Shown here piece by piece: positions 960 through 40,185 of a DNA stretch of 64,000 nt. The notes beneath the pieces were generated by a model, which saw nothing but the letters and a program-made list of their open reading frames with translations, did no database searches and was not told the origin of the DNA. The DNA lies in the IMG/VR virus record IMGVR_UViG_3300047510_001118, positions 1 to 64,000 of that record, one strand, 5' to 3'. The translations under genes and the position numbers were made by a program. Each line of letters starts with the position of its first letter. The stretch's first letter is position 1.

Positions 960-1051
960 TGGTACCCCCGGCGGGAGTCGAACCCACATTGGCCAATTAT
1001 CTGTTGCTCACGGGATATAAATCCGCTGTTTTACCATTAAACTACAGGGGC
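960..1051 (-). tRNA. tRNA-Ile(TAT), with 22-nt variable region
   Basis: Cloverleaf, T-loop TTCGACT, encoded CCA, anticodon loop TTTATAT. Confidence 0.75.
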
Positions 1052-1062
1052 ATATAAAAGAA

Positions 1063-1172
1063 GCTCGGCTGGCGCTTGAATCCGCGGTAACCCTTCTCTT
1101 CCTGGCACCTCTCTACGTCGTCATGATATCTAGTAGAGTTCAGTGTTGTTCCAGTGTAGTTACTGACCGAGC
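1063..1172 (-). ncRNA. ~110-nt structured RNA between tRNAs
   Basis: Nested stems GCTCGG/CCGAGC, GTAAC/GTTAC, CTGG/CCAG, CTCTAC/GTAGAG. Confidence 0.55.
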
Positions 1173-1177
1173 AAACT

Positions 1178-1251
1178 TGGAGCGGGATACGAGAATCGAA
1201 CTCGTAACTAGAGCTTGGAAGGCTTTCGTTTTACCATTAAACTAATCCCGC
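1178..1251 (-). tRNA. tRNA-Gly(TCC)
   Basis: Cloverleaf, CCA, anticodon TCC. Confidence 0.95.
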
Positions 1252-1256
1252 ATAAA

Positions 1257-1331
1257 TGGTACACCGTAGGAGAATCGAACTCCTCTTACCTGCGTGAAAG
1301 GCGGGTGTCCTAACCGATAGACGAACGGTGC
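1257..1331 (-). tRNA. tRNA-Glu(TTC)
   Basis: Cloverleaf, CCA, anticodon TTC. Confidence 0.95.
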
Positions 1332-1335
1332 TTTG

Positions 1336-2121
1336 TTAAAGATATTTCTGTATTCTTTCTGCTATATTAGCCTGTAATTCTAATTTCATAGTGCCGTTTT
1401 CAGCACCATTGGAATGATATTGTTTAAAAAAATCTATACAATCAATACCACGTCCCATGATACGATCAAAAACTTCGATGTTTTCTTTTTCGTCGTCTCC
1501 GAATCGAACCACAGTCCATTTCAATTTATAATGATTTAATACTTTTACTAACTGTGTATAACTTTTAGAATGTTTTCTAATATACCATTCTCTTGTCTGC
1601 GACAATTGAAAAGCCATACGTTTTACTAATTCTTTGTGTACTTCTATAGGATAATCGTCTGGATTATATTCTACATCGCCATAATTGGGACTTTTTTCAA
1701 ACACATATCTTTTCCCATTATGTTTAAATGAACTTACAATATGCGGAAATGTAAAGTCTGTTACTAGCACATGATCTGGCTGTCCGTGCTTTTCTAAATA
1801 TTGTAAAAGTCTTTTATGGTAACCAACAAAATGGGCACCATTCAAACTACGATTAACTACTGTTCCGGGCAACAAGTTTGGCCAACTAGAATTAAGTTCT
1901 TGTTGTCTTAGATATGCCCAAACAGCAGATTCTATATTTTTTGTCGGCATTGGCTCTTCAACTTTATTTTCAATCTTATGTTTTAGATACCATTTGAACG
2001 CCTGAGGAAAATTTTTATGAAACCGAAGACTCCAAGTTCTAGGAGCAGTTTCATCTAAAATTTGATCTGCTAAACAGTTGTTTCCGTTACTTTGACAATC
2101 GCCTAATACTAATATTTTCAT
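1336..2121 (-). CDS. hypothetical protein, SGNH/GDSL-like N-terminus
   Basis: 261 aa, 'KILVLGDCQS' resembles the GDS block; AT-rich insertion in the tRNA array. Confidence 0.6.
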   Translation of the reverse strand: MKILVLGDCQSNGNNCLADQILDETAPRTWSLRFHKNFPQAFKWYLKHKIENKVEEPMPTKNIESAVWAYLRQQELNSSWPNLLPGTVVNRSLNGAHFVGYHKRLLQYLEKHGQPDHVLVTDFTFPHIVSSFKHNGKRYVFEKSPNYGDVEYNPDDYPIEVHKELVKRMAFQLSQTREWYIRKHSKSYTQLVKVLNHYKLKWTVVRFGDDEKENIEVFDRIMGRGIDCIDFFKQYHSNGAENGTMKLELQANIAERIQKYL

Positions 2122-2129
2122 AATTTATA

Positions 2130-2204
2130 TGGTGGAGGATGGGAGGATCGAACTCCCAACTCATGCTTGCAAAGCACATGTGTTCCCATTAGCACCAATC
2201 CCCC
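2130..2204 (-). tRNA. tRNA-Ala(TGC)
   Basis: G3:U70 pair, anticodon TGC, CCA. Confidence 0.95.
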
Positions 2205-2206
2205 AT

Positions 2207-2392
2207 TTAATCTTTATCAGGACAATCTGGATCTATATCCTGATCGTAATACTCGTTCTTCATTATTGCTTCATCAAACTGTTCGTTATCTGACTTTTTC
2301 TTTTTACTAAAGATAGTATCCCAGTTGTTGTCAAAGGTTTTTTGATCAACACTAAATGGTCTTGGTTTACTACCCTTTCCACCGTCTGACAT
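2207..2392 (-). CDS. small conserved phage protein (MSDGGKGSKPRP...)
   Basis: Strong AAGGAG SD; fills the gap between tRNAs. Confidence 0.75.
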   Translation of the reverse strand: MSDGGKGSKPRPFSVDQKTFDNNWDTIFSKKKKSDNEQFDEAIMKNEYYDQDIDPDCPDKD

Positions 2393-2408
2393 AACATCTC
2401 CTTAAAAT

Positions 2409-2485
2409 TGGCTGGCCTACCTGGGCTCGAACCAGGGACCCTTTGATTAACAGTCAAATGCTACTACCAACTGAGCTATAGGCCA
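2409..2485 (-). tRNA. tRNA-Asn(GTT)
   Basis: Cloverleaf, anticodon GTT. Confidence 0.95.
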
Positions 2486-2493
2486 ATAAAACT

Positions 2494-2568
2494 TGGTACC
2501 TGGTGACAGTTTCGAACTGCCGACCCTCTCGGTGTAAACGAGACGCTCTACCCCTGAGCTAACCAGGC
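2494..2568 (-). tRNA. tRNA-Val(TAC)
   Basis: Cloverleaf, anticodon TAC. Confidence 0.95.
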
Positions 2569-2578
2569 AAACTAACAT

Positions 2579-2656
2579 TGGTCGGAGTACAAGGATTCGA
2601 ACCTTGGACCCCCTGGTCCCAAACCAGGTGCGCTAGCCAGACTGCGCCACACTCCG
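2579..2656 (-). tRNA. tRNA-Pro(TGG)
   Basis: Cloverleaf, anticodon TGG. Confidence 0.95.
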
Positions 2657-2657
2657 A

Positions 2658-2810
2658 TTAACTTGGTATTACATGCGGTATATACGGAACTGCTCTTGGA
2701 CCACCATAGAGTTGTTCAAAAAGTTTTTTAGCCTCTTGCGGTGTCGCCGCATAGATTCTTTTCTTTTCTTCACCACTTGGTGTTCTTACAGTTGTTTCAT
2801 ACATTGGCAT
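2658..2810 (-). CDS. small hypothetical protein (MPMYETTVRTP..., 50 aa)
   Basis: AGGAG SD just after the tRNA-Gly CCA; start corrected from the ORF track. Confidence 0.7.
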   Translation of the reverse strand: MPMYETTVRTPSGEEKKRIYAATPQEAKKLFEQLYGGPRAVPYIPHVIPS

Positions 2811-2822
2811 ATAATAACTCCT

Positions 2823-2898
2823 TGGAGCGGGATAAGAGGCTCGAACTCTCGACCTATACCTTGGCAAGGTATCGCTCTACCAACTGAGCTAATCCCGC
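2823..2898 (-). tRNA. tRNA-Gly(GCC)
   Basis: Cloverleaf, anticodon GCC. Confidence 0.95.
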
Positions 2899-2906
2899 AT
2901 AAATTT

Positions 2907-2941
2907 TGGTGCCCCAAGAGAGACTCGAACTCTCACAGAGC
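2907..2941 (-). pseudogene. isolated 3' half of a tRNA (T-arm, acceptor 3' strand, CCA)
   Basis: GAGAG-TTCGAGT-CTCTC-TTGGGGC-ACCA with no upstream arms. Confidence 0.8.
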
Positions 2942-2945
2942 AAAT

Positions 2946-3022
2946 TGGTGCCTCAGGAGGGACTCGAACCCTCAAAATTTGGCTTCTAAGACCAACACGT
3001 ATACCAATTCCGTCACCGAGGC
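2946..3022 (-). tRNA. tRNA-Leu(TAG), short variable loop
   Basis: Leu-type D-loop GGAATTGGTATAC, anticodon TAG, A73. Confidence 0.9.
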
Positions 3023-3456
3023 GTCTTTCTTTCTTCCCACTTGGCTTTGATTGCTTCTGCTATCTTTGCTTTGTGTTCCGGAGACTTAGTTTTACCTAAG
3101 TTTCCTTTTCCTGCCTTACTTGCTGTTTTACGAGCTTGTAACGCACGAGCTTTTTCTAAACCGTGTTTTTCAACAGTTCTTTCCCAAATAGTTTTGCCAC
3201 TGTTTTCAACTTGATCTTGCCTATTCTCTTGTGCCGTCCCCCAATACAGATGATTAGGATTACCGCACTTAGCATTATGACAAGCATGACATAAATGAAC
3301 TTTATGTCCTGTTGGAACAGTTGTATCTAATAAATGTGCTAACAGTCCTTTGAAATAGTAACTGCCAGCACCTCGTTCAACACAGGCTTCATCTAACTTG
3401 AGATGGTTCTGTCTTTCTGCCTTAGGTAGTAAAATGTATTCTTCTATTAGTTTCAT
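3013..3456 (-). CDS. HNH homing endonuclease with NUMOD3-like C-terminus
   Basis: HLCHACHNAKCGNPNHLYWGTAQEN motif; GKTKSPEHKAKIAEA; start taken at MKLIEEY. Confidence 0.8.
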   Translation of the reverse strand: MKLIEEYILLPKAERQNHLKLDEACVERGAGSYYFKGLLAHLLDTTVPTGHKVHLCHACHNAKCGNPNHLYWGTAQENRQDQVENSGKTIWERTVEKHGLEKARALQARKTASKAGKGNLGKTKSPEHKAKIAEAIKAKWEERKTPR

Positions 3457-3484
3457 ACATTTATTTATGCTAAACACGACAAAA

Positions 3485-3511
3485 GCGTGTCTACCATTCC
3501 ACCACCAGGGC
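3485..3511 (-). pseudogene. isolated 5' half of a tRNA-Leu-like gene
   Basis: GCCCTGG-TGGTGGAATGGTAGACACGC, then abrupt loss of tRNA similarity. Confidence 0.75.
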
Positions 3512-3518
3512 AAAAAAT

Positions 3519-3593
3519 TGGTGCCGGATGTCGGGATCGAACTGACGACCTACCGCTTACAAGGCGGTTGCTCTACCACTGAGCTAATCCGGC
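3519..3593 (-). tRNA. tRNA-Thr(TGT)
   Basis: Cloverleaf, anticodon TGT. Confidence 0.95.
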
Positions 3594-3617
3594 GTGATTC
3601 TATTTATGAAAACTATT

Positions 3618-3692
3618 TGGCGGTCTCAACGAGAATCGAACTCGTCCCTACGGCGTGACAGGCCATTATACTAACCGATATACTATGAGACC
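3618..3692 (-). tRNA. tRNA-Asp(GTC)
   Basis: Cloverleaf, anticodon GTC. Confidence 0.95.
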
Positions 3693-3768
3693 ATATAGAA
3701 GCACACAGACTAACTACCAGAAACACTTATAGTGTCATTACTCGGTTCGAGCCAATGTGCTTTTATAT
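3693..3768 (-). ncRNA. inter-tRNA structured RNA A (shared closing stem)
   Basis: ATATAAAAGCACA...TGTGCTTCTATAT terminal stem. Confidence 0.5.
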
Positions 3769-3857
3769 GGTGGAGCCTGAAGGAATTGAACCTAACTGCC
3801 AGCCACCCAACAATATTATGGCAACGGATTTACAGTCCGCCGTTGGGAACAGGCTCC
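3768..3857 (-). tRNA. atypical tRNA-Tyr(GTA)
   Basis: Anticodon arm GCGGA-CTGTAAA-TCCGT, 8-bp acceptor, no D-stem, long V-arm. Confidence 0.7.
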
Positions 3858-3872
3858 AAACTTACGCGAAAT

Positions 3873-3884
3873 TTTTAAAGAACA
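3873..3884 (-). promoter_or_regulatory. boxA-like antitermination element TGTTCTTTAAAA
   Basis: Matches rrn boxA consensus TGCTCTTTAACA; lies downstream of the internal promoter. Confidence 0.6.
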
Positions 3885-3890
3885 AACAGT

Positions 3891-3983
3891 TGGTGGAAGG
3901 TGTGGGATTCGAACCCACGCACCGCATTTTGTACGGTGGACGGTTTAGCAAACCGCTGCCTTCGGCCACTCAGCCAACCTTCC
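3891..3983 (-). tRNA. tRNA-Ser(GCT)
   Basis: Long V-arm, anticodon GCT. Confidence 0.95.
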
Positions 3984-3995
3984 TAACTTGTGTCT

Positions 3996-4024
3996 ATTAT
4001 ACGACAAGTTTTTTAACTTGTCAA
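3996..4024 (-). promoter_or_regulatory. internal sigma70 promoter TTGACA-17-TATAAT with palindromic spacer
   Basis: TTGACAAGTTAAAAAACTTGTCGTATAAT. Confidence 0.85.
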
Positions 4025-4032
4025 CTACTTTA

Positions 4033-4122
4033 TGGCGGAAGCGGTGAGATTCGAACTCACGGACCATTTCTGATCGTCTGTTTTCAAGACAGGTGCAATA
4101 AACCGGACTCTGCCACACTTCC
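4033..4122 (-). tRNA. tRNA-Ser(TGA)
   Basis: Long V-arm, anticodon TGA, G73. Confidence 0.95.
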
Positions 4123-4130
4123 ATAAATTT

Positions 4131-4211
4131 TGGTGCCCCTAATCGGATTCGAACCGATAGTTATGACACTCCTTTTGAGAGAGCCGCCTTTACCAATTTG
4201 GCCATAGGGGC
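4131..4211 (-). tRNA. tRNA-Leu(CAA)
   Basis: Anticodon loop CTCAAAA; reduced V-arm. Confidence 0.9.
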
Positions 4212-4216
4212 AATAC

Positions 4217-4288
4217 TGGCGCCTCTGGAGAGATTCGAACTCCCATAACCTGGTTTAGAAGACCTGGCACTGCTCCATCAGCAGAGGC
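4217..4288 (-). tRNA. tRNA-Arg(TCT), compact D-arm
   Basis: Anticodon loop CTTCTAA; 72 nt. Confidence 0.8.
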
Positions 4289-4291
4289 TAC

Positions 4292-4375
4292 TGGTGCGAG
4301 AGACGGGACTCGAACCCGTATGCCTTTCGACGGCAGATTTTAAGTCTGCTGCGTATACCATTCCGCCACTCTCGC
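4292..4375 (-). tRNA. tRNA-Leu(TAA)
   Basis: Cloverleaf, anticodon TAA. Confidence 0.95.
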
Positions 4376-4379
4376 ATAC

Positions 4380-4455
4380 TGGTGCCGCTCCTTGGGATCG
4401 AACCAAGTTCCTCGGTGCTTCAAACCGGTGCAATGACCACATTTGCTAAAGCGGC
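4380..4455 (-). tRNA. tRNA-Phe(GAA)
   Basis: Anticodon loop TTGAAGC. Confidence 0.9.
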
Positions 4456-4504
4456 AAAAGAAAAACTCTACACACTAACTATGTTAACCGAGTAGAGCCA
4501 TAAT

Positions 4505-4579
4505 TGGGGTGAAGCCGGGAATCGAACCCTGCCTTACTGTTTCACAGACAGCCGTGCGTACCACTACACTAGCAACACC
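4505..4579 (-). tRNA. tRNA-His(GTG)
   Basis: G-1:C73, anticodon GTG. Confidence 0.92.
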
Positions 4580-4585
4580 ATTGTT

Positions 4586-4659
4586 TGGTATCGCGTACGG
4601 GGATCGAACCCGCCTGACTAGGTTGAAAGCCTAGTGACCTCCCAGAAGTCCAACGCGAT
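4586..4659 (-). tRNA. tRNA-Glu(TTC), second copy, divergent
   Basis: Anticodon loop CTTTCAA. Confidence 0.88.
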
Positions 4660-4665
4660 GTTGTT

Positions 4666-4743
4666 TGGCACCCCTGGAAGGACTTGAACCTTCGACTCCT
4701 ACCTTCGCAAGGTAGTACTCTGATTCCGCTGAGTTACAGGGGT
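4666..4743 (-). tRNA. tRNA-Arg(GCG)
   Basis: CTACC-TTGCGAA-GGTAG anticodon arm. Confidence 0.85.
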
Positions 4744-4905
4744 ATTAATACGTTCTAAAGCATCACGTCGCATTTTAAACGGACGATGCTCATCGGGACG
4801 ATGTACAATCAAATATTCCACACCGTCAATGTTTTCGGTCACACGGGTATCGTCACAGACAAATCGCTCATTATTAAAACGATTTTTAAACATAGTTTGT
4901 TTCAT
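4699..4905 (-). CDS. small hypothetical protein; 3' end overlaps tRNA-Arg(GCG)
   Basis: AAGGAG SD; 68 aa. Confidence 0.65.
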   Translation of the reverse strand: MKQTMFKNRFNNERFVCDDTRVTENIDGVEYLIVHRPDEHRPFKMRRDALERINTPVTQRNQSTTLRR

Positions 4906-4927
4906 GACAATCTCCTTAAAGTTGTTT

Positions 4928-5002
4928 TGGCCGGCCTGGAGAGATTCGAACTCCCGACTGCTGGTTTCGAAGACCAGAACTCTTCCACTGAGCTACAGGC
5001 CG
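4928..5002 (-). tRNA. tRNA-Arg(TCG)
   Basis: Anticodon loop CTTCGAA. Confidence 0.92.
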
Positions 5003-5010
5003 ATAATGTT

Positions 5011-5084
5011 TGGCACGGGTGCTAGGGCTCGAACCTAGAATAACAGAGTCAAAGTCTGTGGTGTTACCATTACACTACACCCGA
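5011..5084 (-). tRNA. tRNA-Gln(TTG)
   Basis: Anticodon TTG, G73. Confidence 0.93.
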
Positions 5085-5091
5085 TCAGAAC

Positions 5092-5166
5092 TGGTGGTAA
5101 TGGAAAGAGTCGAACTTTCACAGCGCACCGTATGAAGGTGTTGCACTACCATTATGCTACATTACC
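5092..5166 (-). tRNA. tRNA-CAT (elongator Met or Ile2)
   Basis: Anticodon CAT; lacks initiator C1:A72 mismatch and 3 G-C pairs. Confidence 0.85.
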
Positions 5167-5319
5167 ATATAGAAACATACTAATGAACCAGCCTGACGCA
5201 GCCGTACGCTTGGCAGATCGTTTCCAATCTGTTTCTCGCTTTTCTCGGTACTCTGTATGTTCAGGATTCCGCAGTCCTCAATACAATCGCTTGTAAGGGC
5301 AACTAATATGTTTTTATAT
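5167..5319 (-). ncRNA. inter-tRNA structured RNA B (shared closing stem)
   Basis: ATATAAAAACATA...TATGTTTCTATAT terminal stem, internal hairpins. Confidence 0.55.
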
Positions 5320-5392
5320 GGTAGGGGCACAGAGAATCGAACTCTGATTAATAGGTTAAAAGCCTACTACTTTGCCGTTAAGTTATACCCCC
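5319..5392 (-). tRNA. tRNA-Lys(TTT)
   Basis: Anticodon TTT. Confidence 0.93.
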
Positions 5393-5518
5393 ACGATCTT
5401 ACCACTCTTGTCACTTTCCATAACAGGATCTCCTATTTTAAATTTTTGTCGATAAAATATATCAATACTACAAGCATGAGTAAAACGGCCACCGCCCCAT
5501 TTTAGTTCCCCTTATAGT

Positions 5519-5593
5519 TGGTGCCTAATCTTGGGAACGATCCAAGGACCTATGCGTTATCAACACATTGCTCTACCACTGAGCTAATTAGGC
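5519..5593 (-). tRNA. tRNA-Ile(GAT)
   Basis: Anticodon GAT; variant T-loop ATCGTTC. Confidence 0.9.
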
Positions 5594-5799
5594 AAAATGA
5601 ATTTGTAAGTAGTTGCCCCATCGTTATAGCAACCATTCACCCGTGTAATTAAGCCGGCCGGGACTCGGTACGTCACTTGGAATACTTAACCAACGTGTCT
5701 ATTTTTTGCTAGGGTTTTGCGCCCCCCGTTGCCTTACTATAGTCAGCTCTTCGAAGAAGCCTGCTATAGTGTCTTTCTCTTGCTGACACTTACAAAACT

Positions 5800-5877
5800 T
5801 GGAGTGAGGAGTCGGATTTGAACCGACGGCTTTACAGTTTTGCAGACTGTTGCATTGGGCCTCTCTGCCATCCTCAC
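5800..5877 (-). tRNA. tRNA-Cys(GCA)
   Basis: Anticodon GCA, U73. Confidence 0.93.
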
Positions 5878-5883
5878 ATTACT

Positions 5884-5960
5884 TGGCGACCCGGGAAGGA
5901 TTTGAACCTCCGACATTTGGTTTTGGAGACCAACGTTCTGCCAGACTGAACTACCGAGCC
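5884..5960 (-). tRNA. tRNA-Trp(CCA)
   Basis: Anticodon CCA, G73. Confidence 0.93.
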
Positions 5961-17269: not shown

Positions 17270-17371
17270 AAAAGTTCCTAAAATAAAAAGGGCTGTATTT
17301 CTTCAGCCCTAACTATGCATATTAACGCATTAGTAAACAAAACGTAAGTCTTTTTGGTGAAACTGATAAAA

Positions 17372-17395
17372 GAAAAGGCTCCGAAGAGCCTTTTC
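17372..17395 (-). terminator. terminator after tmRNA
   Basis: gaaaaggctc-cgaa-gagccttttc. Confidence 0.8.
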
Positions 17396-17752
17396 ACTAT
17401 TTTGGGTTACAAGGTATAGTTACCCCGGAGCTGCAGTTTCTTAGGCTGCTAGTTCAAAACGCTTGCCTGTTACAGCGAAGTCAGTTTTGAAATACTCAAA
17501 TGTAGATGCGTTTGCATTTACTAGTTTTGCTTGATTAACGGTCATCGCCTACCGTGTTGCCTCTTTCGCTATCTCGCCATGTCGAAACCGGTCGGGCCCA
17601 TCATAAAAGGACTAGAGCAAATACTACGAGTACAACTACTACACCTATTCCTAGATGAGTTAGATCATCGTTCATACTAATCTCCTTATGGTGGACCCGG
17701 GGGGAATCGAACCCCCGTCCACAACGCCTTCACTACGAAGGAATTACAACAA
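17396..17752 (-). ncRNA. ssrA: two-piece (circularly permuted) tmRNA
   Basis: Acceptor piece ends GGTTCGATTCCCCCCGGGTCCACCA (17689). Coding piece starts GGGCCCGACCGGTTTCGAC (17599). G3:U70. Tag ANASTFEYFKTDFAVTGKRFELAA* at 17441-17515. Confidence 0.9.
17601..17675 (-). CDS. 24-aa hydrophobic peptide inside the tmRNA intervening segment
   Basis: AAGGAG SD + MNDDLTHLGIGVVVVLVVFALVLL*. Confidence 0.5.
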   Translation of the reverse strand: MNDDLTHLGIGVVVVLVVFALVLL

Positions 17753-17756
17753 TACC

Positions 17757-17960
17757 TTAGGCTGGCTGAATATTGCTAGCCTGTTGACCTTTCATGCCCA
17801 TAGTTACTTCAAACCTTACACTCTGTCCTTCTTGTAGGCTTTTGAAGCCACTTGACTGAATCTGTGAAAAGTGAGCAAATAAGTCTGCGCCACCATCGTC
17901 CGGTGTAATGAACCCAAAACCTTTGGCGTCGTTAAACCATTTTACTTTTCCTGTTACCAT
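17757..17960 (-). CDS. cspA: cold-shock protein
   Basis: [20 protein letters not shown] motifs. Confidence 0.95.
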
Positions 17961-25531: not shown

Positions 25532-25695
25532 TATCGACAAATGCTAAAACTTTTAACGCCGTTTAAACTAAACGTCTTTAGATAATTTTCCATGTCATCA
25601 TTATAGGCTATCATTTTGGCCGGTGTCATAAATTTGTATTGTAACATCAACCATACAGTGTAGTCAAGCCACCAATCTATAGGTGTGTATATCAT
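25531..25695 (-). CDS. small hypothetical protein, 54 aa
   Basis: ATGA and TAATG overlaps with both neighbours. Confidence 0.55.
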   Translation of the reverse strand: MIYTPIDWWLDYTVWLMLQYKFMTPAKMIAYNDDMENYLKTFSLNGVKSFSICR

Positions 25696-27734
25696 TTTTC
25701 GTGTGCGATAAATTCGCCGTTCCAGTTGGCTCCTAAATCTTGTTGTTTCATAAACTCACAACGTTCAATCCAGATCTTATAATACTTGTCCATCTGTCCA
25801 CCAAATAGTCCTTTCATCTTAGCACACATGGCGGCTGCTTCGTCAAACTTTTTCTGTTTATACAAGGCATGCATTTTGTCATGTTGTTCCTTGTCTTTAC
25901 TATAATCTTCGCCACGTGTACGAATTACTGTGTAAATTAAATCTGCTACAGTTTTACCCTTAGGCTGTAAGTTGTCTAATAGCAAGTAGAAGAAGTCGTC
26001 TTTGGTTCTGTTGTATGTTTCAGCACCAATGATAGCCAACACTCCGTAGGCTTTACAACGAGCTTCTAATCGAGCCGCAGTACTAACCATGTCACCTAAG
26101 ATGTCGTAACTGTGTCTATCAGTTGATCCCATCTCGCCAATAAAGCCAATGCCTGTGTTACAACCCCAACCCATAGCCGCAGGCGGTAATCCTTGTGCTT
26201 CCATTTCTTTGGTATAAGCATCAACGGCATCCAACATCTCTAAACCAACTTTAACAATAGTGTGTGCGTGATTGGGATCATCAATCGGAGCACCATGTAT
26301 GTGCATACTCGCATCGCCTACATACTTAATAACCATACCTTTGTTATCCATAATAGGTTTACTGATGCTGTCCATGTAGCCGTTCATATATTTGCCAAGT
26401 CCAGCAACATCGTCTCCATAGTGTTCACCAATCGGTGTGAAGCCGCGCAAGTCACTAAACATAACTGATACGTCTTTGCGAACACCACGCTTGATTAAGT
26501 CTGGATCCTTTTGTAGCATCTCTACTACTTCTTTAGAGCAGTAGCCAGCAAACTGTTTCTTAATTGCCTGCTTCTGTAAGAATTCGCTTACAAACTTAAC
26601 GCCATAACAATGAAGAGCAACGATAATAAGCCCAAACGTGATTGCAGTCGCGTCCGCCAAGACGAGCCAATTATTGAAAGCGTAGATAGTACCAGGAACG
26701 ATGGCACCAATAGTAACCACAGTAGCACCAATGCCAACATAAGTCCACCTCGATAAGAAAATTAATAATATGCCAATTCCTAGTAATGCTAGAATTTCAA
26801 CACCGGCGGCATAGTCAGGTCGTTGAATTGTTACACCATTTATCATTGTGCCTAATACTGCGGCTTGTACATCCTGCGGCCATGTTCCTTGAACTGGTGT
26901 TGGCACAGGGTTACCTAAACCTGTAGCGGCAACACCTACAATAACTACAGCACCAGCAAAGTCTTTAGGAAGGTTAACTGCTGAAGCAGACTTTGAACGT
27001 TGACTCCAGTCAATCCATACACGACCTTTGTCGTCTGTGGCAATAGGACCAAACTTTGGTATGCGCATTTTTTCTACGCCGCCTTCGAACAACTTAATCT
27101 GTGTTGTTGAATCTCCTGCAGCCACACGTAATGCTTCCATAGCAATACTAGGATAGACTACACCGTCAACGGCAATTACCAAAGGCATTCGTCTTACTAC
27201 GTTGTCGTTTTCTTCTTCGGTGTGAATAGTTCCTGTGCCAACTGCACGACTTTCAAGCACAGGTACGTTGGCCATTATGCCAGCATACTGTGTTATTTGA
27301 TTAGCATACTCGTTTTTAATTACTGCTGTACTAGGTTGTCGAGGAGTATTCTTATTTTTATTTTCTGGAGTGTTTGGCAGTATTACAGGAAACTTGTTCA
27401 TAGTTTCTGCTAGGACACGATCCTTACCAAATCTATCTTCCTCTGACAGTAGTATATTAAACACAACCAGTCCTGCGTTACGTTTGTACAAGTCTTCAAT
27501 TATCTTAGCGTAAACATCTCTAGGGAAAGGATACTGCCCGTATTTGGCTATAGTATCTTCATCAATGTTTACTGTGTAAATGTTGTTTTCAGTAGGTGCT
27601 TTGGCCGTTATTAATTCGTCAAAGTATTTCAAACGAACATTCTCAACAAACGAAGGGTCTGCAATTCGTATGCCCACTACTAACGCTAGGGTTAGTAGGG
27701 CAGTCCAAGGGCTTAAAAGAAATTTTTTCATCAT
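25692..27734 (-). CDS. CHASE2-domain class III adenylate/guanylate cyclase
   Basis: CHASE2, 3 TM, FSDLRGFT, KYVGD, AARLE. Confidence 0.92.
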   Translation of the reverse strand: MMKKFLLSPWTALLTLALVVGIRIADPSFVENVRLKYFDELITAKAPTENNIYTVNIDEDTIAKYGQYPFPRDVYAKIIEDLYKRNAGLVVFNILLSEEDRFGKDRVLAETMNKFPVILPNTPENKNKNTPRQPSTAVIKNEYANQITQYAGIMANVPVLESRAVGTGTIHTEEENDNVVRRMPLVIAVDGVVYPSIAMEALRVAAGDSTTQIKLFEGGVEKMRIPKFGPIATDDKGRVWIDWSQRSKSASAVNLPKDFAGAVVIVGVAATGLGNPVPTPVQGTWPQDVQAAVLGTMINGVTIQRPDYAAGVEILALLGIGILLIFLSRWTYVGIGATVVTIGAIVPGTIYAFNNWLVLADATAITFGLIIVALHCYGVKFVSEFLQKQAIKKQFAGYCSKEVVEMLQKDPDLIKRGVRKDVSVMFSDLRGFTPIGEHYGDDVAGLGKYMNGYMDSISKPIMDNKGMVIKYVGDASMHIHGAPIDDPNHAHTIVKVGLEMLDAVDAYTKEMEAQGLPPAAMGWGCNTGIGFIGEMGSTDRHSYDILGDMVSTAARLEARCKAYGVLAIIGAETYNRTKDDFFYLLLDNLQPKGKTVADLIYTVIRTRGEDYSKDKEQHDKMHALYKQKKFDEAAAMCAKMKGLFGGQMDKYYKIWIERCEFMKQQDLGANWNGEFIAHEK

Positions 27735-32922: not shown

Positions 32923-34047
32923 CTAAGGTTTGTCCGTTGTAAGCATGTCATTTCTTACGAACCCACCCCTTCCGTTTTTACTCTTAACGGTACTCCATTC
33001 CTGATTATGAACTGTGACTGTGACTTCTGTGCCTTTTTCAAAAAACCAAACTCTTGTACTGTTATCATCATCTGTTCTTCTTACATAATAATGATTGTTA
33101 AAATACATAGTTGAACCATTTATAATTTCTTTTTTAGGTCTTGGTCCAATTTCCGTTCCGTAGTCCCCGGCCTTGCTTTCTGTCTTAGTTTCTGCTCCTG
33201 TTGTTGCAGGCGGCGCATCTGTTGTAACAGGCTTGACATCATCTTTCTTCTCCTCTATAACAGCAGGTTTAGAAACCTTGTATCTCCATAAACCCTTTTT
33301 CTGACCTTCAACAATCATATCATGTACTGCTTGCTCGATAGCCACACGCACAGCATAGGTAGTTGGTTCGTTTAATGCCATACCATTTTCTAATTCAAGT
33401 GCTTTAGTTCCTGCGTCTACAAATCTTAGAACACCTACGTTGTGTTGTGTGCTATAGATAGTCTTACTAACAGCATTGGTGATTAACACTTCTCCGCTGT
33501 TTACGCTGACTAATCTTAGGCTAATAACAATCTCATCTACACGATATTGTTGGCTTCCGCCAATGCCTAAAAATCTAGCACCGTTTCCGCCGCTTCTTAT
33601 ATTGGTGTCGTAACCGATGATACCACCCTCAATCATTACGCCAGCCACTGTCATTGGTTTAAGGGGCTTGGCATCTTTGCCCTCATAAACTTCCCGTTGG
33701 TTGCGAATCAATTGTCTTTCTTTTATGAGATTATCTAACCCGACACGTTCGACCACCTTAAACCAACCCTTTGCGTCCTGTAGTGCTTTAATTAAAAACA
33801 CTTCAGAACCCTGTGTCACAGCCTTGCTGAACACTGCTAATCTATCATTGGGCTTCATTTGCCCAGTTTTATCTAAAAATCCATAAACAGCAATGGTAAT
33901 CGGTGGACCATCCAATTCTGGCAATTTATTAATTAGATTTTCTCTTGGCTGAAGAGCTATTGGCTCTTCTTTAGATGCTTCCATCTGTATATGGGCGCAT
34001 CCTGACAGCGCAGTGGCTACTAATAATGTTAATAGTAATCGTTTCAT
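32923..34047 (-). CDS. csgG: curli secretion lipoprotein CsgG with SH3-like C-terminal domain
   Basis: LSGC lipobox, F.DKTGQ.K, VVERVGLDNL.KERQ.IR. Confidence 0.9.
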   Translation of the reverse strand: MKRLLLTLLVATALSGCAHIQMEASKEEPIALQPRENLINKLPELDGPPITIAVYGFLDKTGQMKPNDRLAVFSKAVTQGSEVFLIKALQDAKGWFKVVERVGLDNLIKERQLIRNQREVYEGKDAKPLKPMTVAGVMIEGGIIGYDTNIRSGGNGARFLGIGGSQQYRVDEIVISLRLVSVNSGEVLITNAVSKTIYSTQHNVGVLRFVDAGTKALELENGMALNEPTTYAVRVAIEQAVHDMIVEGQKKGLWRYKVSKPAVIEEKKDDVKPVTTDAPPATTGAETKTESKAGDYGTEIGPRPKKEIINGSTMYFNNHYYVRRTDDDNSTRVWFFEKGTEVTVTVHNQEWSTVKSKNGRGGFVRNDMLTTDKP

Positions 34048-38223: not shown

Positions 38224-40104
38224 TCAATTCTTTTTGGCTTCAGTAAACTCAGCATCAACAACATCGTTATCAGAGGACGATGTTGTAGCCTCAGCAGTTT
38301 TTGCGGCTAAAATTGGTTGTATAGCCACTGCTAGGTCGCTGGTCTTTTGAACGATGATATCTTTGTCGTCACCCTTGACTGCTTCTAAAACAGCATCACA
38401 GGCTTCTTCAATTTTACCTTTTTGTTCTTCAGTAAGTTTATCTTTTACTTCATCCAAATCTTTTTTAACTGTATGTACCTGTGCTTCAGCAGAATTTCTA
38501 GCGTCAATCAACTCTCGTTGTTTACGATCACTTTCAGCATTGGCTTCTGCTTCTTGAACCATGCGTTCAATTTCTTCCTTACTTAGGCCGCTGTCGCTCT
38601 TGATAGTGATTTGATTTTCTTTGCCGGTGTTTTTATCTTTAGCACTGATTTTCATAATGCCGTTGGCATCAATATCAAATGTAACTTCAATCTGTGGCTG
38701 ACCACGACGTGCTGGAGCAATGCCATCTAACTTAAACTCGCCGAGTAGTTTATTGTATTGGAACAGTTCTCGTTCACCTTGACCAACTTTAATATCCACT
38801 GCTGGCTGATTATCTTCTGCTGTACTAAACACTTGACTAGCCTTGGTAGGGATAGTTGTATTCTTTTGTACAAGTTTAGTAAACACACCGCCCATAGTTT
38901 CAATGCCTAGACTCAATGGTGTTACGTCTAACAATAAAACGTCTGTGCGATCGCCTGCTAGTACACTACCTTGAATAGCCGCACCAACTGCTACTGCTTC
39001 GTCTGGATTAACATCACGACGTGGAGCCTTGCCAAACAGACGTTCAACTTCTTCTTGTACCTTAGGCATACGTGTCTGACCACCGACTAAGATAACTTCG
39101 TCGATGTCAGCGGCTGTTACACCCGCATCTTTCATAGCAATGCGGCAAGGCGCCAATGAACGGTTAATCAAATCTTCAACTAGTGCTTCTAGTTTACTTC
39201 TTGTAATTTTAACAATAAGGTGTTTTGGACCACTGGCATCTGCTGTAATGTATGGTAGGTTGACCTCAGTCTGTGAACTATTTGAAAGTTCAATCTTGGC
39301 TTTTTCTGCGGCATCTTTTAATCTTTGTAGAGCCAGTGTATCAGATTTTAAATCTATACCTTGTTCTTTCTTAAACTCATCAACTAAGAAATCCATGATG
39401 CGTTGATCAAAGTCTTCACCACCTAGGAATGTATCGCCGTTTGTTGACAATACTTCAATTTGTTTATCGCCGTCGACATCAGCAATCTCGATAATAGATA
39501 CGTCAAACGTACCACCACCTAAATCGTATACAGCAATCTTTCGATCCTTTTTATCAGTTTTATCAACACCGTAGGCTAGTGCGGCTGCTGTTGGTTCGTT
39601 GATAATACGCAAGACTTCTAAGCCAGCAATCTGTCCAGCATCTTTGGTAGCCTGGCGTTGTGCGTCATTAAAATATGCTGGTACTGTGATAACTGCTTGA
39701 GTTACTTCGTGACCTAAATAGTCTTCAGCAGTCTTTTTCATCTTGCGAAGAACTTCTGCTGAAATCTGTGGAGGTGCTAGTTCTTTGTCTTGAGCCTTAA
39801 CCCAAGCATCACCGTTTTTTGCTTCGATGATACTGTAAGGTATAAGATCAATTTCTTTTTGTACAGCCTGCTCTTTAAATTTACGACCAATTAGTCGTTT
39901 AGACGCATAGATTGTATTTTTTGGGTTTGTAACCGCTTGACGCTTTGCTGATGCGCCAACTAGAATTTCATCTGAAGTATAGGCGACGATACTGGGTGTA
40001 GTACGGGCACCTTCAGAGTTTTCAATTACTTTGGAATTTCCTGCCTCGATGATAGCCACGCATGAGTTGGTGGTTCCGAGGTCAATACCGATGACTTTGC
40101 TCAT
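38224..40104 (-). CDS. dnaK: chaperone DnaK
   Basis: [18 protein letters not shown]; start corrected. Confidence 0.97.
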
Positions 40105-40185
40105 ATTGTTATCTCCTTTAATTAAGCAAGATTTAAGTTTGGGCAACTGCCCGTTTATAGGACCCGAAGCATCCTACAATTTTAT

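Follow-up and report, generated by a model that had tools for sequence, protein, structure and literature searches.

In a jumbo-phage genome, we have identified a gene for a probable tyrosine tRNA that lacks a D-arm hairpin and whose D-region strand instead pairs with the loop of the variable (V) arm, forming a pseudoknot. The layout is conserved in 88 distinct phage and bacterial sequences, it is missed by the tRNA finder used here (ARAGORN), and we found no paper describing it in PMC or bioRxiv, although subscription-only papers were not covered. Collectively, the data suggest a working tyrosine-accepting elongator tRNA with a rewired core. We are highly confident in the secondary structure (about 0.95), whereas we put the probability that the RNA is a functional tRNATyr at about 0.8; charging and function are inferred.

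The window, i.e., the whole stretch of DNA analyzed (64,000 nucleotides), is the first 64 kb of the 278,126-bp freshwater virus record IMGVR_UViG_3300047510_001118 in IMG/VR, which is estimated to be about 75% complete. The phage encodes a ribonucleotide reductase and, at 17371-17792 (minus strand), a permuted (two-piece) tmRNA that matches Rfam beta_tmRNA at 126 bits (gathering score 84) and tmRNA_permuted at 132 bits, with the tag peptide ANASTFEYFKTDFAVTGKRFELAA; this hints at a betaproteobacterial host. At 25692-27734, 32923-34047, and 38224-40146 (all on the minus strand), it carries a CHASE2-adenylate/guanylate cyclase, a CsgG-like lipoprotein, and a full-length Hsp70/DnaK (852 bits), which are unusual cargo for a phage. 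Positions 960-5960 hold a minus-strand array of 27 tRNAs called by ARAGORN, and a second small tRNA cluster (Met-CAU, Leu-UAA, and Arg-UCU) lies on the other strand of the same record at 113957-114206, outside the window. The gene discussed here is positioned in a gap of the minus-strand array, 33 nt downstream of tRNASer(GCU) and 75 nt upstream of tRNAAsp. ARAGORN calls it neither here nor in about 110 related loci, apart from one miscall as Leu. No match to the canonical tRNA family RF00005 (gathering threshold 29 bits) was reported at E <= 1 or E <= 10 (one lower-scoring match of the same clan was suppressed), and Rfam 15, which has no family for this RNA, gives only a sub-threshold match to tRNASec (RF01852), 29.3 bits against a gathering score of 47.

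The gene occupies 3768-3857 on the minus strand and encodes a 90-nt RNA including the CCA end, such that RNA position p corresponds to window coordinate 3858-p. The 5′ strand of the 8-bp acceptor-stem (RNA 1-8, GGAGCCUG; 3850-3857) pairs with CAGGCUCC (3772-3779), which is followed by the discriminator base A87 (3771) and an encoded CCA (3768-3770). Only UUCCCAAC(G) is present between the acceptor- and anticodon-stems. This stretch comprises a two-nucleotide connector, U9 and U10 (3848-3849), and the D-region strand CCCAAC (RNA 11-16; 3842-3847). The anticodon arm (3823-3841) has a 6-bp stem (RNA 17-22/30-35), the outer two pairs of which are G.U, and the loop CUGUAAA with the anticodon GUA at 3831-3833. 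It is followed by the 5′ strand of the V-stem, GCCA (RNA 36-39, with the conserved core 36-38; 3819-3822), an A/U-rich connector (RNA 40-46; 3812-3818), which is inferred to lead from the V-stem back to the D/V helix, and GUUGGG (RNA 47-52; 3806-3811), the exact complement of CCCAAC. Next come U53, G54, and G55 (3803-3805), the 3′ strand of the V-stem, UGGC (RNA 57-60; 3798-3801), and the T-arm (3780-3794), in which the stem RNA 64-67/75-78 (U.U, A-U, G-C, and G-C) closes the loop UUCAAUU.

Every element listed in the sequence-only reading, which proposed a tRNATyr(GTA) without a D-arm and with pairing between the D region and the loop of the V-arm, is thus present, and its pseudoknot interpretation is strongly supported. 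However, some details need refinement. The conserved V-stem is 3-4 bp rather than the proposed 5 bp (UGCCA/UGGCA flanking a 17-nt loop); A39:U57 pairs in only about a third of the members, while U35 could pair with either G17 or A61. The T-stem, read as 3 bp, is a 4-position stem whose first pair is U.U in this subfamily but a standard pair in others, which gives an 8/4 acceptor/T layout. Moreover, the D helix is not lost but formed in trans, continuous with the 6-bp anticodon-stem.

To examine the fold by comparative analysis, we collected homologs. Three exact-pattern scans of viral contigs, one with the anticodon arm and V-stem strand fixed, one with only the anticodon loop and T-loop fixed and a long gap, and one blind to the anticodon, together returned more than 100 loci. 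A scan of 185,579 species genomes added bacterial copies in Planctomycetota [several Phycisphaerae MAGs, Neorhodopirellula pilleata Pla100 (two copies about 3.7 kb apart), Bythopirellula polymerisocia Pla144, and a complete Planctomycetaceae chromosome], in Tateyamaria omphalii, and in MAGs labeled Spiribacter, Anaerolineales, Flavobacteriales, and Neisseriaceae. Removal of duplicates left 88 distinct sequences, 71 from phage contigs and 17 from bacterial genomes, with RNA lengths of 86-94 nt. All carry GUA, including the members found with the anticodon-blind pattern. Because the extraction filter required some D/V complementarity, we checked it for bias. All 64 distinct viral matches to a pattern that does not constrain the helix have the complement and pass the filter, 55 of them with a perfect 6-bp complement, while a random hexamer finds a near-complement in that region about 18% of the time.

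On the single sequence alone, the fold is not significant (z = -1.46), but the comparative evidence is decisive. With the pseudoknot written explicitly, 95% of the cells in the alignment are paired and 23 of 28 pairs show changes on both sides. None of 500 shuffles reaches any of the observed measures, and sliding the partners lowers the pairing to 37-62%. The D/V helix is paired in 99.2% of the cells, with double changes at 5 of 6 pairs, up to five pair types per position, and 35 different complementary versions. In the acceptor-stem, 98.6% of the cells are paired and all 8 pairs covary, including the 8th (GC 73, AU 8, and UG 4), with 45 versions in total. The anticodon-stem is 99.6% paired with covariation at 4 pairs. 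For the V-stem, the core 36-38/58-60 is paired in about 99% of the cells (87.8% for the 4-bp stem 36-39/57-60), and among its 7 versions are GCC/GGC (70), GUC/GAC (10), and GGC/GCC (4) together with GCG/CGC and AAC/GUU. The V-stem lies between the two strands of the D/V helix on one side and outside them on the other, so the fold is a true pseudoknot. An APC-corrected mutual-information scan over all column pairs also recovers the helices, the top 12 pairs all lying in the proposed helices and including four D/V pairs and the V-stem pair 37:59. Likewise, RNAalifold, with no prior, predicts the 8-bp acceptor-stem and the D/V helix running straight into the anticodon-stem.

The two-nucleotide connector is UU in 71 of 88 members, the stretch from position 39 up to the D/V helix (39-46) is 7-8 nt in 75 of 88 with the consensus UAAUAU, the anticodon loop is invariant in 88 of 88, and UGG follows the D/V helix in 81 of 88. 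The T-loop is UUCRAUU in 83 of 88, and the first T-stem pair (64:78) is U.U in 57 members and GC, GU, or AU in 31. The discriminator is A in 88 of 88 (A73 in tRNA numbering), G+1/C+72 is present in 87 of 88, and CCA is encoded in 71 of 88.

The 8-bp acceptor-stem and the 4-position T-stem give the same 12-layer acceptor/T branch as in a normal 7/5 tRNA. Since the D-region strand is continuous with the 5′ strand of the anticodon-stem, we infer that it takes the spatial role of the canonical descending D strand (22-25 plus 26), whereas the strand from the V loop takes the role of the ascending strand (10-13). The D/V helix is suggested to stack on the anticodon-stem, and the six plus six base pairs would match the length of the D- plus anticodon-stem in tRNASec. 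U53, G54, and G55 follow where a D-loop would begin, and we propose that the GG corresponds to G18 and G19 of the D-loop. G55 and C70 in the T-loop (the C56 equivalent) are both invariant, while G54/U69 changes to A54/G69 together in five members with odd T-loops. This fits elbow contacts like G18:Ψ55 and G19:C56. A subfamily in viral contigs (loci L007, L012, L032, L015, and L016) with non-canonical T-loops (UGCGUUA, GGCAGUA, and UGCAAUU) has AAG instead of UGG after the D/V helix, a correlated change that may mark this contact. In this scenario, however, the V-stem has to lie along the D/V helix, as only 1-3 nt link G55 to the V-stem.

Several features suggest that the RNA acts as a tRNATyr in translation. 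The invariant anticodon loop and A73, the nearly invariant G+1/C+72, the long variable region, the frequently encoded CCA, and the preserved acceptor/T branch are what a substrate for TyrRS, EF-Tu, and the ribosome needs. ARAGORN finds 30 conventional tRNAs for 19 amino acids in the phage record, with only Tyr missing, and a covariance model for canonical tRNATyr (R2) finds no other Tyr gene there. Among 31 loci that carry the family and have at least 20 tRNAs, Tyr is absent from the ARAGORN calls in 29, while the next most often missing amino acids are absent in 5. ARAGORN "tRNATyr" calls beside the gene in two loci, L020 and L028, have atypical loops and discriminators and were not counted as good canonical tRNATyr. 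No TyrRS domain (PF00579) was found in the record, which is only about 75% complete, and hence the host's bacterial-type TyrRS presumably charges the RNA, through A73, G+1/C+72, and the GUA anticodon, after which it would read UAY codons. It is further inferred that the usual enzymes cut the RNA out of the polycistronic tRNA array. Direct evidence of expression, end processing, CCA status, and charging is lacking, and contigs from four riverine metatranscriptomes (Logan) lie on 3792-3873 only at low depth (about 2-23), where DNA carry-over cannot be excluded.

A covariance model of the family (R1) scores the gene at 102.8 bits at exactly 3768-3857, and this is the only copy in the record. Strong matches occur in only 6 of 151 sampled Planctomycetota genomes, the next best hit scoring 41 bits, and in only 1 of 101 genomes in the Tateyamaria family. 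The gene is therefore sporadic in bacteria and not a lineage standard. In the two planctomycete isolates, N. pilleata Pla100 and B. polymerisocia Pla144, it is part of dense arrays of 22-32 tRNA genes within 8 kb, whereas in the Planctomycetaceae chromosome and in T. omphalii it is a lone gene among housekeeping genes. Both of the latter genomes, the two cellular genomes tested in full, also have a canonical tRNATyr, so no organism is shown to depend on the pseudoknotted form. For T. omphalii KCTC 12333, an RF00005 search listed 41 tRNAs for 19 amino acids and no Tyr, but R2 then found a normal tRNATyr. The canonical tRNATyr at the genome locus G152:C3:465691-465772 was found by a dedicated model and ARAGORN but missed in the RF00005 listing, and hence absence from that listing is not reliable.

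A BLAST search of GenBank phages with the window's gene found nothing, while a planctomycete member as query found Pseudomonas phage SCYZ1. In total, five cultured Pseudomonas phages (SCYZ1, Rembedalsseter, and Lyrsu01-03; 45-47 kb) carry the gene with no annotation over it, next to tRNAPro and just upstream of the small terminase gene. The one plasmid hit, in Acidiphilium, is a canonical tRNATyr. Three cultured-phage sequences not used to build R1 fit it at 73-84 bits, and the cultured phages add new compensatory versions, CCUCAC/GUGAGG, CCCCAC/GUGGGG, and CCUGUC/GACAGG in the D/V helix, and show GUC/GAC and GUG/CAC in the V-stem, the latter in Lyrsu03. SCYZ1 carries only this gene and one tRNAPro.

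Compared with canonical bacterial class-II tRNATyr, the RNA shares the GUA anticodon in a CUGUAAA loop, A73, G+1/C+72, a long variable region, a TΨC-type T-loop, the CCA end, and the Tyr slot in tRNA arrays. It differs in having no D hairpin, an 8/4 instead of a 7/5 acceptor/T layout, and a D helix made with the V-arm loop. R2 gives it only 41.5 bits, against 54-78 bits for the top class-II tRNA hits of this model in five bacterial genomes, which include true tRNATyr at 54-56 bits. The 8/4 tRNAs and allo-tRNAs (Mukai et al. 2017, PMC5389517) also have an 8-bp acceptor-stem, a 4-bp T-stem, and a long variable arm, and occur in phage tRNA clusters and some bacteria, but the published species are Ser, His, Cys, Sec, and allo-tRNAs with a normal D hairpin, and neither an 8/4 tRNATyr nor a pseudoknot is mentioned. 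tRNASec, the best Rfam match, probably shares the 8-bp acceptor-stem, the 6-bp D helix, the 6-bp anticodon-stem, and the long V region, but the anticodon here is GUA rather than UCA, the discriminator is A rather than G, and the D helix is not a hairpin. In D-armless mitochondrial tRNAs [e.g., nematode and mammalian mt-tRNASer; PMC7609411], the arm is simply replaced by a short loop in a shrunken tRNA, while the D helix is here kept at full length (6 bp) but built from a distant strand; this review of non-canonical tRNAs mentions no tRNA of the present type. Viral tRNA-like structures such as the tymovirus TLS appear to be pseudoknotted mimics of the tRNA shape as well, but their pseudoknot builds the acceptor arm at the 3′ end of an RNA genome, whereas here it builds the core of a free tRNA encoded in a DNA phage tRNA array. 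The cloverleaf with a D hairpin is regarded as nearly universal outside mitochondria, and this family shows that viruses infecting bacteria, and some bacteria, keep a full-size tRNA whose core is built in a different strand order, which bears on how far RNase P, the CCA enzyme, TyrRS, EF-Tu, and the ribosome tolerate a changed core.

Tyr has a single isoacceptor, and an extra gene therefore adds supply and not decoding range. The phage T5 tRNATyr, a normal cloverleaf, is reported to resist, through a distinctive variable loop, the retron-Eco7/Septu PtuAB nuclease that cuts the variable loop of host tRNATyr (PMC13096335; PMC11555353). This raises the possibility that a variable loop buried in a pseudoknot is an extreme form of such an escape. 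In this tentative scenario, which rests on analogy only, the ascending D-stem strand and the GG elbow contact have been moved into the variable-arm loop, and the resulting tRNA, still working in translation, would have spread among phages and into some bacteria because it hides the variable loop from Septu/PtuAB-type nucleases. It would then represent a structural counter-defense at the level of tRNA architecture and a possible natural scaffold for orthogonal tRNA design.

Among alternative explanations, the RNA might be a tRNA-shaped decoy or regulator, for example a sponge or competitive substrate for nucleases directed against tRNATyr or a ligand for some other tRNA-binding factor. In keeping with this, both cellular genomes tested keep a canonical tRNATyr beside it, and it occurs alone or nearly alone in several phages. 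We consider this unlikely, however, as a decoy would not need an invariant 7-nt anticodon loop, A73, an encoded CCA, and a preserved 12-layer acceptor/T branch all together, and in 29 of 31 large arrays it is the only candidate for Tyr. Slightly less likely still, the RNA forms only the nested long-range helix without the V-stem, or switches between the two helices. The V-stem core is only 3 bp, A39:U57 is mostly unpaired, pairs 17:35 and 35:61 both fit the data, and RNAalifold returns the nested form, although this program cannot draw pseudoknots. On the other hand, the middle V-stem pair shows four standard types with double changes (CG 72, UA 10, GC 4, and AU 1), 37:59 is among the top mutual-information pairs, Lyrsu03 adds GUG/CAC, and the spacer lengths around the V-stem are tightly conserved. 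Charging by another class-II synthetase (LeuRS or SerRS), such that UAY codons would be read as a different amino acid, could be suggested by the long variable region, by A73, which is also the tRNALeu discriminator, and by a core that might mislead TyrRS. This is very improbable, since GUA and A73 are likely the main determinants for bacterial TyrRS, the arrays that hold the gene already have Leu and Ser tRNAs and lack only Tyr, and the ORFs in the window showed no sign of recoding under table 11. Finally, a decayed pseudogene with chance complementarity, for which the missing ARAGORN and RF00005 calls and the insignificant single-sequence fold could be cited, is refuted by the compensatory changes in every helix across 88 distinct sequences from phages and several bacterial phyla.

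At 960-1051 (minus strand), ARAGORN calls a 92-nt tRNAIle(UAU) with a long, class-II-like variable arm, discriminator A, and an A.C mismatch closing the anticodon-stem, which RF00005 scores at 54 bits; a long-arm tRNA with an Ile anticodon is unusual, and its identity is unclear (Leu- or Tyr-like, an insertion, or a reassigned AUA reader). The tRNAArg(UCU) at 4217-4288 (minus strand) has a shrunken D-arm (3-bp stem and very short loop) and scores only 25.1 bits on RF00005, below the gathering score; a second Arg(UCU) call lies at 114130-114206 of the record. The tRNAHis(GUG) at 4506-4579 (minus strand) scores low (36 bits) and, as drawn by ARAGORN, has two U.U mismatches in the acceptor-stem, and it may represent another non-standard acceptor/T layout like that of the published 8/4 tRNAHis of phages.
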